Below, in pieces: positions 17,173 through 24,538 of a DNA stretch of 64,000 bases. The notes under the pieces are model-generated. The model did no database searches and was not told the DNA's origin. It worked only from the letters and a program-made list of their open reading frames with translations. Origin of the DNA: Epithemia pelagica. Its lineage: Eukaryota > Protista > Bacillariophyta. Made by a program: the position numbers and the translations under genes. Location of the stretch: the NCBI GenBank assembly GCA_946965045.2, contig OX337230.1, forward strand, positions 4,092,001 through 4,156,000, in the 5' to 3' direction. How positions within the stretch are numbered: the stretch's first letter is position 1; the number at the start of each line of letters is the position of its first letter.

Positions 17173-20100
17173 CTAGGATCCTTCCGCAGGAGGCATTGAG
17201 GTATGAAAGGGTCCATTTTGGGCTCCAAAAATATTGTCGGGATCCATGGCCTCTTTGATTTGCTGCAGGGCCTGTCGCGTCGGAGGCGACTGGACCTGGT
17301 CCAGGAAATGGGACCGATGTTTGCCAAGGCCATGATGATGACTCAGCGATCCACCGCATCGCAAAATCTCTTGCCGGGCACCTTCTTCCAACTGGCCAAA
17401 GACGGACAAGGGATCCACAATGCCCTTGGAACTCATGCACAAATAAAAGTAGAGACACACGCCATCCGAATAGAGTTGCGTGACACGACACCCCAAAAAG
17501 GGTTTTCCGGGTAGATGGAGACGTTCGTGTAGTTGACGAACCACCGTCTTGGTTCCTTTTACAATCGAGTGTACCGTGGACCAGGGAGCAAAGGTTTCAA
17601 AGGATTCTCCCAGAATCTGGTAGCTCATGGCAAAATCACGTAGATAGGCAATCATAAAGGTCATTTCGTAGGCGCGTTGACCAGCCTGTCGACCCAGGCG
17701 AAGGCCTCCGTAGGACTTGGTCAAGCCACGAATCATGGTTTGTTGCGCTTGTACCTCGGCCTGGGAACCTTCGTATCCCACTGCCAGACACACGGCACGG
17801 CTCTTGTTGTTCTTGTTCAGGAACAGGGCCAATAAGGAATGAGCTAGTGTTTCTTTTGCCTTTTCGTACAAGGATTCGGGGTCGGGACGAAGGGCTTGAC
17901 CCAGTTGAAAATGTTCATGATCCAGTAAACGAACACTGGCCGGAACGAGAGTCGATTGCCGCGAAAGGTCTCGAAGGAGATGTACCCCACTCTCCCAATC
18001 GGGCAACAAGATTGCCTCGTGGTCACAAATCTCGGGCAGTCGTTGAATGCGCAAGACGGCCGAGACTATAATCCCCAAACATCCTTCGGATCCCAGTAAC
18101 AAGGCCGTCAGGTCGACACCACAGGATTCTCGTCCCCAATGGCCATGGTTCATCAACCCTCCTGCTCCCACCACTTGGATTCCAGTCACAATATCTTCAA
18201 TATTGCCATATCGGTTCCGCTTCATACCACTCGCTTTGGTGGCAATCCAGCCGCCCAGAGTACTGAATTCCATACTATCCGGTTCGTGTCCCACCGTGTA
18301 GCCGAAACGGTTCAACTGCTCATTCAACTCCTTGCCCGTAATGCCAGCCTGAACGTGGGCCAGGTGATTTTCGTAGTCCATCTTGATCACTTGATTCAGT
18401 TTACTCATATCAACCGAAATGATCGGACGGGGCTCTTGTTGAATGGTGGGACAACAGATGGCTCGGGAAACGCACGTTCCACCACCATAGGGGATGAGAC
18501 ACCATTGTCCCTTGGCCAAGGTCACCAGAGCGAGGACCTCGTTGGACGTGGCAGGCCAAACCACCACGTCCGGAATACGGAGTTTCTCACCAAACCGAAT
18601 GTTGTACACGTCGGACAATGCATGCCCCGTGCCGTGACGGGTCCGGTCGTGAATATCCATAGAAACTGTCTGGCATACTTGGCGAAGCGATTCTACTTCG
18701 GCTTGCCCGAGCGCTGACGCCATTGTAGCTTCGTGTTCATCTAGTTTGACAAGAACTCCGCATTCTTCTGTTGGATCGATCTTGACCCCAACTGCTTTCT
18801 CCACGAATGGAATCAACTTGGAGAATCGTTTCCCGCCACGCATATAGCGATCCCCAGTGACGGACACATGGGGTCGGTCTGTTCTCGATACATTCAAAAC
18901 AAACGACGTATCATGAAACCCCCAAAAGCCAAGCCTCTCTTTCGACGGCAGGATATACGGATGGATTGGAGTCACCGATCGAGGTTTCGTCCGTTTCAGG
19001 GTTCCAACCGCCTTCACACCCGCCGCTGCTCGGAGCAAAATGACAGGTACCGTTTTGTCGTTCCTCGATGCGAGCTGTAATACATGATCTGCCGCTGGAT
19101 CGGGGAATCCATCCTGCTTTAATTGCTGGATTGCGTTGGCGATTGCTTGGTCCGCTCGCGCAAATTGGTTTCCCAGGCACTGGGCCACTTGCCTCACTTT
19201 GGCCGAGTCCCGAATTTCTGTGGACACACCAGCGAGAGGGATCTTACTCAGCCACAAAGACCAGCGGGGATACTCCTCTCGGATTAATGGCTCATACACA
19301 TGTGCCATATGCAACACAATCGTCCACAATTCACAATCATCCTCCGGAAGCGTCAATTTCTGGCTGATTGCAGTTTCGTTTTCCCATCTCGGGCAATTCA
19401 TCGTCTCAAGACAAGTTGCGATGGTCTGTTCGGAAAGGGAAAAGAGTTTGGCAGCGGCAGCAATGTGGAACGAAGAAGCCACCAATAGCTTCTGCTGTCG
19501 CCTTTGAACTTCCAGAGCTACGGCTTCTGCGGAACCTTTCAAATTCTCTCCAACCGGCAAGATGGGCGCTGCGGCAATGTGGATTCGTCCAAGTGAAACT
19601 TCTCCAGCTACTACTCGCTGAAGTAAACAACGCAAGAAATGTGAGGTTCCATTCAGTGCAGAGGTTTCTCGTTTCAAAAACAATCCGCAACATGTTACTG
19701 ACCCTTAACCAAGAGACAAGACCACTCAAGTTCAATCCATGCCCAGCGCCGTCGCGGAGCTCCGACGACAGAGCTTCCTGCTCTGCAATTCGTTCGTAGT
19801 TGATTGTGATTGGCAGAATGGCACACGATGGATCTGCGGCTTGGATCTGACGGATCAGCCCCGTCTTGGGTGGGACAAATCGCCGATCCCTGCTTCTAGT
19901 ACCTTCAATATACACCTCCATGACCACAGACTCATTCGACAAGCATTCGGCTACTTCCTTGGACGCTTGATCAACACCTGTTTTTCCACGTCCACGAAAC
20001 ACATAAAACATGCGAAACAAGGGTATGATCCAGGCGAATATGGGAAGACTGCTAAATTCAAAGGCGGCAGCAATGACCGGAAGGTCAATCTGCAACTCCG

Positions 20101-23100: not shown

Positions 23101-24538
23101 TGTACACTTGAGCACAATCTTCCACCACGTCCAAGGAATGGGCAGTGGCCATGGATCGCACAGTGGACCAATCGCATTCGGTCACAACCCCAAACACATG
23201 AACGACCACAATGGCCACGGTCCGATCCGTCACACACGCTTCCAGGGCGGCACAATCCACCTGCAATGAGTGTTGTGGAAGTGTCGTTGTCGTGGTCGTT
23301 GTTGTCGTGGTGGAAGTGGCAAAGTCGACCCCGACGGCTTGCAATTGATGATGCTCCAAAATGGCCAACATGCCGGGAACGGTAATGGGAGGTGTGATGA
23401 GGACTTGCGACCCCGGCGGAAATTGACGGGCCACGAGATAGAGATCCCACAAGGATCGCACCGAACGTCCCACCACCATCGATTCCGACTTGGTATTGTC
23501 GTGGTTGTTCTTATTGTTGGAGGAGTCGAGGTGGTTCCAGGCCCGGCCAATATCCTTGGTCAATTGATGCCGCTGGGAAGAACACCCTTGTGGTGACATT
23601 ATTCGTGTCAGACATTGATGGGCCGTCCACGCCAAATCGGCATAGGAAATATCCAATTGTCCTCGCGGAATCAAGCCTCGGCTGGATCTTGTAGTGGTTT
23701 CAAGAGACGATAACGAAACGGGTCCCTTACTGCTCGATGCAAGGGTGGAGGGACCTTTGCCTGTCTCCATCCCAACAGTATTCGTCGGGTCGTCCTTCTG
23801 CTTGTTGGTGATCTTCTTGAACGACTGGATCCGTGTCTCGTCATTCTTCTTGAGCGCGGATCCATTGGTTCCACGGCCCGGATCCATTTCTTGGCGATTC
23901 TTGTTCTTGTTGCTCTGTGATGGGTTACTCCGTTGCAGTTTCTGGTAGTGGAGTCTTAAGGCGTGAACATGGTCCTGGAGGGCCGGCGAGTGCGCCGTGG
24001 CCAAGTCGAGATAGGCTTGCAGGGCAGACTGTCGTGTGTCGTGGCGACAGGCCTTCCAGGCCTGATACTTGGCATGGGCCGTCGGTTGAAACAGGGCTGA
24101 TGGTTGCGGCTGGTCGACCGGACAGGGTCCGACCGTGACATGCTTGTACCATCCATACAAGCGCAATTGATCCGCAATGGAAATGCTGCGGCTGCTGCTG
24201 GAGGACGATGGTGCCTGACTCCGAATCCATTCCGCCACGTGATCAAACATCCACTGCAATCGCGTCTCTTCTTCGTCGTCTTCTTCGTCTTCCTCGTCTT
24301 TGGATCCTTGACTATGTTGGATGGAAGCATTGTCGTCCATATTCGACAGTTCCTGTCCGACTCCAACCGGTTCTGGTTGTTGTGGGTCCCCAGATTGGAT
24401 CGTCGTCGGCTTGCCATTGTCGAACCCTTCCTCGACGACGACGACCGCCGGATTATTCTCTGCGTTGTTAGCGTCGTCATTTTGGACAGTCCTTCCAATG
24501 TGTTGCTCCTCTTGGAAATCATTGATTCCGTTCATCAT
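17173..24538 (-). CDS. Multidomain fusion ACBP - DegT-type PLP aminotransferase - TM - fatty acyl-CoA reductase - DHAP/G3P acyltransferase - alkyl-DHAP synthase (exons 24538-19703 and 19617-17173, ~2426 aa)
   Basis: An 85-nt phase-0 GTCAGT...TTCAG intron (19702-19618) joins the two track ORFs in frame. Motifs: LRLYGWYKHVTVGPC..AKYQAW; VVEDCAQ..SFGFIKTATALGGG; VTGVTGFIG..YTFSK..IVRPSIV; THRSFFD..IEGTRSR; STLGGWIATKASGMKRNRYGNIED..HHHGLG. Confidence 0.9.

Follow-up and report, generated by a model that had tools for sequence, protein, structure and literature searches.

In a 64,000-nucleotide stretch of contig OX337230.1 from the diatom Epithemia pelagica (assembly GCA_946965045.2, positions 4,092,001 to 4,156,000; hereafter the window, numbered from its first nucleotide), the minus strand at 17173-24538 carries a nuclear gene of two exons which, with good confidence, we read as encoding a membrane-anchored multi-enzyme of 2,426 residues, conserved in diatoms, that makes alkyl-dihydroxyacetone phosphate (alkyl-DHAP). 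The predicted protein joins an acyl-CoA-binding domain (ACBP), a DegT-type aminotransferase using pyridoxal phosphate (PLP), a fatty acyl-CoA reductase (FAR), a DHAP acyltransferase and an alkyl-DHAP synthase (AGPS). An earlier note on this DNA had proposed a single-chain FAR-DHAP acyltransferase-AGPS enzyme with an acyl-CoA binder and a PLP enzyme, and the present comparisons support that proposal. The gene structure (by comparison with relatives), the domains, the conservation of the catalytic residues and of the fusion, and the bacterial gene linkage described below are supported by the sequences.

Ether-lipid synthesis has been regarded as belonging to animals and some protists, with the work done in peroxisomes by enzymes that are separate or in two parts. 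In diatoms, which are major primary producers, all committed steps of the pathway, together with an acyl-CoA binder and an aminotransferase, would lie on one membrane-anchored chain, and this fusion is conserved in both centric and pennate lineages. It raises the question of whether diatoms make ether or amino-ether lipids, and where, given that the protein has no type 1 peroxisomal targeting signal (PTS1). What is apparently new here is the assignment of the aminotransferase to a subfamily and the linkage of that subfamily to AGPS-like genes in bacteria; the fusion is already present in databases and apparently undescribed in the literature that we found.

Gene structure and splicing

The minus strand has two open reading frames (ORFs) in different frames, 19406..24538(-) with 1710 aa and 17173..19683(-) with 836 aa. 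They are joined by a GT-AG intron, and the junction on the minus strand reads ...TTAAGG/GTCAGT...TACTTCAG/CGAGTA..., where slashes mark the borders. The parts of the gene are as follows.

19703..24538, minus strand: exon 1, 1612 codons with the ATG at 24538; ACBP, DegT-like aminotransferase, hydrophobic hairpin, FAR and most of the acyltransferase
19618..19702, minus strand: intron, 85 nt, phase 0, GT-AG
17173..19617, minus strand: exon 2, 814 codons and the stop; end of the acyltransferase region, linker and AGPS

Since exon 1 is 4836 nt long, or 1612 whole codons, the intron (19702..19618 on the minus strand) is in phase 0. The spliced coding sequence gives 2426 aa, with its sole stop at the end and a C-terminus of PPAEGS. 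The joining of the two ORFs in frame by this intron had been claimed before, and it is borne out by the sequence, by a gap-free alignment over the junction and by an intron site shared with relatives. The junction peptide SWLR/RVVAGEVSLGRIHI (in longer form SWLR/RVVAGEVSLGRIHIAAA) aligns without gaps with 55 full-length homologues, that is, diatom-type proteins of 2150-2650 aa, and this alignment passes through the conserved motif W-L...G-x-V-x-x-G-R-I/V-H/Y. Two relatives, L001 (96% amino acid identity) and L002 (62%), have the same two adjacent ORFs, and in both a GT...AG interval falls at that codon. The exon flanks of L002 are conserved, the interior of its intron has diverged and the intron's length has changed to about 83 nt (a count of alignment columns); neither intron length is divisible by three. 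The intron had been placed between domains, which proved wrong: it lies inside the region homologous to acyltransferases, which runs to residue 1666. Over residues 913-1666, and thus across the junction at 1612/1613, the protein is colinear with P0159, a single FAR-acyltransferase protein of the bacterium Myxococcus. In addition, P0109, the complete 2287-aa ORF of an MMETSP transcript from a relative, has every domain of the fusion. Comparison with homologues strongly supports the predicted splice in Epithemia pelagica.

The region could also be read as two genes, in which the intron is kept, a protein of ACBP, DegT-like, FAR and acyltransferase parts runs to the stop at 19406, and AGPS comes from a separate transcript. 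ORF 1 does stay open for 98 codons beyond the splice donor, prokaryote-style gene callers split close relatives in just this way (P0001, P0002), and no spliced read was seen in the sequencing runs aligned to the window. However, those runs look genomic, so that their silence is uninformative, and the read-through tail (VSNMLRIVFETRNL..., also present in P0001) matches nothing in the full-length homologues aligned. Together with the bacterial single protein that spans the junction, the diverged intron interior between conserved flanks, the lengths that would break the frame and the relative's transcript holding the entire fusion, this makes the reading as two genes very improbable.

A further run, X2, covers window positions 17050-19640 with a depth that is about 94 where the gene has its 3' end and falls to about 5 farther upstream, and one of its contigs (19201-19618) stops exactly at the last base common to the spliced and unspliced forms. 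This may be the pattern of a 3'-biased RNA run with a branch point at the splice, but we do not count it as evidence.

Domains and catalytic residues

Domains were called by Pfam on the spliced protein, and conservation was scored over the window protein and the 55 homologues (56 sequences). All features lie on the minus strand.

24002..24247, minus strand: acyl-CoA-binding domain (residues 98-179; PF00887, 52.4 bits, cut-off 28.3)
22139..23656, minus strand: DegT-type PLP aminotransferase (residues about 295-800; PF01041 match at 423-534, 51.5 bits, cut-off 19.8)
21989..22120, minus strand: hydrophobic hairpin (residues about 807-850; Kyte-Doolittle peak 2.51)
20960..21790, minus strand: FAR (residues 917-1193; NAD_binding_4 PF07993, E 9e-45, 153 bits)
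19456..20206, minus strand: GNPAT/PlsB-type acyltransferase region (residues 1445-1666, with the intron inside; PF01553 at 1445-1579, 59 bits)
17215..18996, minus strand: AGPS (exon 2 residues 208-801; FAD_binding_4 and FAD-oxidase_C, 108 bits each)

The list of five domains agrees with the earlier one, and the Pfam scan, the matches to solved structures and the conserved motifs all speak for it. The synthase gave the clearest match, with E 3e-130 against guinea-pig AGPS (4bby) over 74-656 of its 658 residues, and about 1e-24 against D-lactate dehydrogenase. The sites corresponding to Arg419 (PASVRLLD), Tyr578 (CLYFY) and His615-617 (SLSHHHG) in the guinea-pig numbering are kept; two of these sites are marked by the mutant entries 4bca and 4bc7. 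The Arg is invariant in 56/56 sequences, and the Tyr and the HHH in 50/50 homologue sequences covering those columns. In the FAR part, which matches a solved plant fatty acyl-CoA reductase (PDB 7eoz), the glycine motif T/S-G-x-T-G-F-x-G (TGxTGFxG here) and the YxxxK are invariant or show conservative variation only. The acyltransferase has the motifs H1463xxxxD1468, EGTRSR (EGxRSR) and ILPITINYE (P-x-x-x-N-Y-E, block IV), with the key positions invariant, and its best matches are GPAT1 (8e4y) and models of PlsB in the GNPAT branch. The ACBP contacts Y131, K132 and K157 (YK and K-Y-x-A-W) are conserved in the homologues having the domain. No family-level name was given by NCBIfam to any of three parts of the protein.

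The earlier note had described intact motifs of a DegT/DnrJ PLP enzyme. The Pfam match covers just one third of the profile, but the structural model shows the entire fold. An AlphaFold (AF2) model of the domain built with 42 homologues has a pLDDT of 83.5 and a pTM of 0.87, and Foldseek with this model gave whole-chain matches to DegT enzymes (TM-score by target 0.6-0.72), from which we take the DegT-type domain to be complete, with insertions. The PLP lysine, Lys502 (23033-23035), lies within FSFGFIKTAT, and Asp474, the predicted partner of the pyridine nitrogen, lies within VVEDCAQ; this region aligns with perosamine synthase, with the lysine at the stretch that holds K186. K502 and D474 are invariant in 56/56 sequences. 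In the model, then, the domain is a complete DegT fold-type I aminotransferase with its catalytic residues in place. It contains a run of eleven threonines (23280-23320, residues about 408-419) in a loop of model pLDDT about 68-72, which looks like a lineage-specific low-complexity insertion.

The two TM-like helices noted earlier are a hydrophobic hairpin at about 807-850; nearly all homologues have one or two stretches of hydrophobic residues there, so that the hairpin is conserved in position but not in sequence. From its hydrophobicity it is a probable membrane anchor. Standing between the aminotransferase and the FAR, it would place both halves of the protein on one face of the membrane.

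Proposed function

Every catalytic motif is conserved across the diatom sequences, as would fit an enzyme whose single chain performs the FAR step, the acylation of DHAP and the AGPS step. From these sequences we infer the enzyme activities, the order of the steps, channelling and the membrane involved, as follows. The ACBP domain would take up long-chain acyl-CoA, and the FAR domain would convert one acyl-CoA to fatty alcohol. The GNPAT/PlsB-type acyltransferase would transfer a second acyl chain to DHAP, and the AGPS domain would then exchange this acyl group for the fatty alcohol, giving 1-O-alkyl-DHAP. The hairpin would keep both halves at the same membrane face, and the DegT-type PLP domain, whose catalytic residues are intact, would most likely act on a DHAP-derived intermediate at its keto group.

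Several points weigh against the synthesis of alkyl-DHAP by this protein. No report of ether glycerolipids in diatoms was found in the open-access literature. The activities of all members of the family are predicted from sequence, and a preference of the acyltransferase for DHAP over glycerol-3-phosphate is suggested by the fusion to AGPS and by the context of bacterial operons only. Of four sequencing runs, X1 and X4 have records of 440-510 kb and contigs that cross the intron without a joint, and were therefore taken as genomic and silent on splicing. Finally, a PTS1-like C-terminus is found neither in the window protein nor in any of the 55 full-length homologues, which extends to the family the earlier remark that the chain ends in PPAEGS without an SKL-type signal. 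Diatoms have been reported, in a reference cited in PMC4690255, to import peroxisomal matrix proteins by PTS1 only. Taken together, these leave the usual setting of the pathway, the peroxisomal matrix, unsupported.

Distribution in diatoms

The search for the same architecture that had been suggested yielded more than 50 diatom proteins, already public in UniRef and JGI and automatically named alkylglycerone-phosphate synthase. They come from pennates and centrics, among them Nitzschia, Fistulifera, Seminavis, Thalassiosira, Cyclotella, Discostella, Stephanodiscus and Skeletonema; from Pseudo-nitzschia, only the fusion's N-terminal part was found. The fusion also occurs on many contigs of marine metagenomes. 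As judged from these sequences, it is conserved across diatoms and is not peculiar to the genome of Epithemia pelagica. No match named Phaeodactylum or Thalassiosira pseudonana appeared in the homologue search, in which eukaryotic genome collections were not included, and no paper on the diatom fusion was found in the open-access literature.

A eukaryote-wide survey of the pathway from 2026 describes AGPS, GNPAT and FAR as patchy within SAR and names ciliates as the sole Diaphoretickes with FARAT, the bifunctional FAR-DHAP acyltransferase (PMC13012113). The diatom family therefore seems to have been overlooked, though present in databases. Two proteins of the oomycete Aphanomyces (P0175 and P0178, 893-1192 aa) have the FARAT-type set PF07993, PF03015, PF01553 and PF19277, and these appear to conflict with the survey's restriction to ciliates.

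Relatives of the FAR-acyltransferase and AGPS parts

Outside diatoms, the best matches of the FAR-acyltransferase part were bacterial FAR-acyltransferase fusions of 870-930 aa from Sericytochromatia, Thermoleophilia and Myxococcus, with 250-265 bits. FARAT-type proteins of ciliates and oomycetes, which carry the additional domains Sterile (PF03015) and PF19277, scored 130-186 bits against the diatom part. A phylogenetic tree of this part has three well-supported clades (diatom, bacterial and eukaryotic FARAT); the diatom clade has a support of 100 and a long stem, and the path from it is shorter to the bacterial FAR-acyltransferases. The tree is unrooted, and with three clades horizontal transfer and divergence are not distinguished by it.

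The bacterial FAR-acyltransferase genes are found in operons with the order AGPS, FAR-acyltransferase and short-chain dehydrogenase/reductase (SDR), of which we compared three (SDR-type operons below), and this arrangement ties that type of acyltransferase to AGPS. The AGPS of these operons scored 427-475 bits against the diatom AGPS, the closest among the bacterial genes compared and similar to the score of animal AGPS. One metagenomic bacterial operon (L005:5192-11770) has, in this order, Lipid_desat (CarF/PEDS1-type), AGPS, FAR-acyltransferase and SDR genes, and is a candidate for a complete plasmalogen cluster.

The aminotransferase subfamily and its gene neighbours

A profile of the diatom aminotransferase domain was searched against 1.8 billion representative sequences. 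After the diatom fusions, it found many stand-alone proteins of about 400-460 aa which match from end to end, with E 1e-70 to 1e-83; the diatom domain alone matched the solved sugar DegT enzymes in the PDB with about E 1e-8, and as the search methods differ, this gap is indicative only. Matches of the domain to NCBIfam equivalogs reach 23-43 bits against cut-offs of 375-650, and the neighbours of the subfamily's genes are oxidases and lipid enzymes, not sugar-nucleotide genes. By these sequence comparisons, the diatom aminotransferase belongs to a distinct DegT subfamily. Among the members whose source is named are proteins of Pedosphaera, a Pacearchaeota archaeon and a crinoid. The last, P0263 from Antedon mediterranea, is a stand-alone member of 432 aa, annotated as uncharacterised and encoded on a scaffold of 30 Mb, and the subfamily may also exist in animals, unless P0263 is a contamination.

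Some members are fused to other enzymes. In P0318 (L007:4256-7258) the DegT-like domain is joined to DAO and DAO_C, of the glycerol-3-phosphate oxidase type, and genes for a CDP-alcohol phosphatidyltransferase and a CDP-diglyceride synthase lie next to it. P0299 and P0363 are fusions to a PF01553 acyltransferase with a glycerol-3-phosphate oxidase gene upstream. P0269, the Pacearchaeota protein, is fused to FAD_binding_4, and its gene follows a lactate permease gene.

We also took a census of the genes around the DegT-like gene at 80 loci of bacterial genomes. An AGPS-like gene directly adjoins it in five of the 80, from two phyla: L010, L028 and L058 in Verrucomicrobiota, and L067 and L076 in Gemmatimonadota. 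In L028 the genes for FAR, acyltransferase, AGPS and DegT-like protein follow one another on one strand; in L058 the order is acyltransferase, AGPS and DegT-like, with FAR convergent; and in L067 a HAD phosphatase gene and the DegT-like gene face AGPS, FAR and PAP2 phosphatase genes. These AGPS-like proteins retain the Arg, Tyr and HHH sites and scored 232-272 bits against the diatom AGPS. The two phosphatases of L067, HAD at L067:5086-5871 directly before the DegT-like gene and the PAP2 lipid phosphatase at L067:10363-11565 flanking FAR, are candidates for steps that dephosphorylate the product.

In three other loci (L030, 5053-8734; L056, 5878-8920; L062, 5132-8897) a glycerol-3-phosphate oxidase gene lies just downstream of the DegT-like gene, with an acyltransferase gene just upstream in L030 and L062 and no acyltransferase in L056. 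These clusters come from Rhodothermales and Gemmatimonadaceae, and together with P0318 they may represent a path to serinol-type (2-amino) glycerolipids without an ether bond. In seven loci (L049, L015, L040, L066, L029, L070 and L061), belonging to Planctomycetota or Nitrospirota, the gene immediately upstream encodes an FAD_binding_4 oxidase other than AGPS, which scored about 35-43 bits against the diatom synthase; the oxidase fused in P0269 is of this kind. The SDR partner of the FAR-acyltransferase operons is absent from all 80 loci, and no DegT-like gene is present in the three SDR-type operons. When a universal partner was sought without bias, no family of neighbours occurred in more than seven of the 80 loci, most of which have no lipid genes, so that the subfamily lacks any one general partner. 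The recurring theme suggested by these sequences is that the DegT-like gene stands beside an enzyme by which a DHAP-type ketone is made or carried.

In a DegT tree of 102 rows the backbone was unresolved, and the diatom sequences did not group with the bacterial members linked to AGPS. Direct descent of the fusion from an operon like L028 was considered and rejected, since the diatom acyltransferase domain does not find that cluster's acyltransferase, and the SDR-type operons have an AGPS closer to the diatom one than the cluster's AGPS-like protein.

Possible roles of the aminotransferase

The aminotransferase is probably, from its conservation and gene linkage, part of the ether-lipid pathway. 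A tentative proposal, which extends and does not exclude the synthesis of alkyl-DHAP, is that it converts the C2 keto group of 1-O-alkyl-DHAP, or of acyl-DHAP, into an amine. AGPS chemistry requires the C2 keto group. Amination on the pathway must for that reason come after AGPS and would give an O-alkyl-serinol phosphate; it is conceivable, though doubtful, that this product, 1-O-alkyl-2-amino-2-deoxyglycerol-3-phosphate ('alkyl-serinol phosphate'), is the backbone of an amino-ether lipid not yet described, as the otherwise unexplained amino-adding domain hints.

Amination is favoured by the invariant PLP lysine and aspartate in a complete DegT fold, by the subfamily being far closer to the diatom domain than the sugar DegT enzymes are (with the reservation on methods given above), and by its members adjoining AGPS-like genes with the catalytic residues kept in Verrucomicrobiota and Gemmatimonadota, or being clustered with or fused to glycerol-3-phosphate oxidase (P0318) or acyltransferase (P0299/P0363). 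The mutual absence of SDR and DegT-like genes, in the 80 loci on one side and the three SDR-type operons on the other, points the same way. There is also a precedent for the reaction, since RtxA's N-terminal domain (PMC3222319) and Cj1437 (PMC11800397) are DHAP transaminases that give serinol phosphate. On the other side, the linkage concerns just five plus three of the 80 loci, most being without lipid genes and seven having the other FAD oxidase; the DegT tree fails to join the diatoms with the AGPS-linked bacterial members; the AGPS-like neighbours are of a more distant type (232-272 against 427-475 bits); and the substrate is not readable from sequence. Our literature search found only tunicate serinolipids and N-acyl serinols. 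To our knowledge, no alkyl-serinol phosphate lipid is known from diatoms or from the bacteria with linked AGPS and DegT-like genes.

In its widest form, the amination proposal would have diatoms making amino-ether lipids with a megasynthase and some Verrucomicrobiota and Gemmatimonadota doing likewise with separate genes, the aminotransferase replacing the alkyl-DHAP reductase and the product being sphingoid-like, built from DHAP and not from serine; we regard this wider picture as speculative and hold it with low confidence. That the subfamily recurs in bacteria in the company of AGPS, of acyltransferases and of glycerol-3-phosphate oxidase points to a shared, uncharacterised handling of DHAP-type ketones.

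It is less likely still, and in our view improbable, that the aminotransferase stands off the pathway, either as a scaffold or dimerisation module or as a sugar aminotransferase fused by chance, with conventional alkyl-DHAP as the only product and a separate reductase acting on it. DegT enzymes are dimers, and their dimerisation could merely aid assembly; the closest matches among solved structures are without exception aminotransferases of sugars or inositols, and most bacterial members of the subfamily are not beside lipid genes. However, a scaffold needs no PLP lysine and aspartate kept invariant across the diversity of diatoms, and chance hardly accounts for a linkage that arises independently in several bacterial phyla and involves AGPS, acyltransferases and glycerol-3-phosphate oxidase.

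Comparison with known systems

The closest functional parallel is FARAT of Tetrahymena thermophila and Dictyostelium (PMC13012113, PMC7375469), whose activities localise to peroxisomes (PMC13012113); the Tetrahymena fusion had been named as a precedent, and the survey confirms it. In both proteins FAR is N-terminal to a GNPAT-type acyltransferase on one chain, so that both substrates of AGPS are supplied. The diatom protein differs in having in addition the ACBP, the aminotransferase, the membrane hairpin and AGPS, and in lacking PTS1 and, by Pfam, the Sterile (PF03015) and PF19277 domains that both the ciliate and the oomycete hits have. By sequence, it should work like FARAT plus AGPS, yet it forms a clade of its own outside the eukaryotic FARAT clade.

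The FAR-acyltransferase part has its nearest relatives, with 30% identity and a colinear alignment of 770 residues, in the operons of the Myxococcus type, for which MXAN_1675 is named (PMC13012113); these operons link the same three chemistries. There, the genes are separate and follow the order AGPS, FAR-acyltransferase and SDR, whereas the diatom order is FAR, acyltransferase and AGPS, and the diatom protein has the aminotransferase and ACBP instead of SDR. The clusters of L028, L058, L010, L067 and L076 have the same four predicted catalytic activities as the diatom protein and the same DegT subfamily, and L028 also shares the order FAR, acyltransferase and AGPS. They differ in being separate genes, with a short PlsC-type acyltransferase and the more distant AGPS-like protein described above; we found no characterisation of these clusters.

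Animal AGPS (4bby) resembles the diatom AGPS over nearly its whole chain, with the FAD domain, catalytic Tyr, HHH loop and Arg kept. It is a separate matrix protein imported by an N-terminal PTS2, whereas the diatom AGPS is the C-terminal module of a membrane-anchored fusion. RtxA (Bradyrhizobium elkanii) and Cj1437 (Campylobacter jejuni), both of which we take to be members of the DegT family, are likened to the diatom domain by reaction only, the amination of the DHAP keto group with PLP being the kind of reaction proposed for it. Their products feed a toxin and a capsule, respectively, and not lipids (PMC3222319, PMC11800397).

Neighbouring gene

A divergent neighbour at 24722-26200 (+) has an ORF of about 490 aa, with a partial match to MoaC (28 bits) as its only hit. 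The same neighbour is present in the relative with 96% identity (L001:2339-3739), so that synteny is kept.

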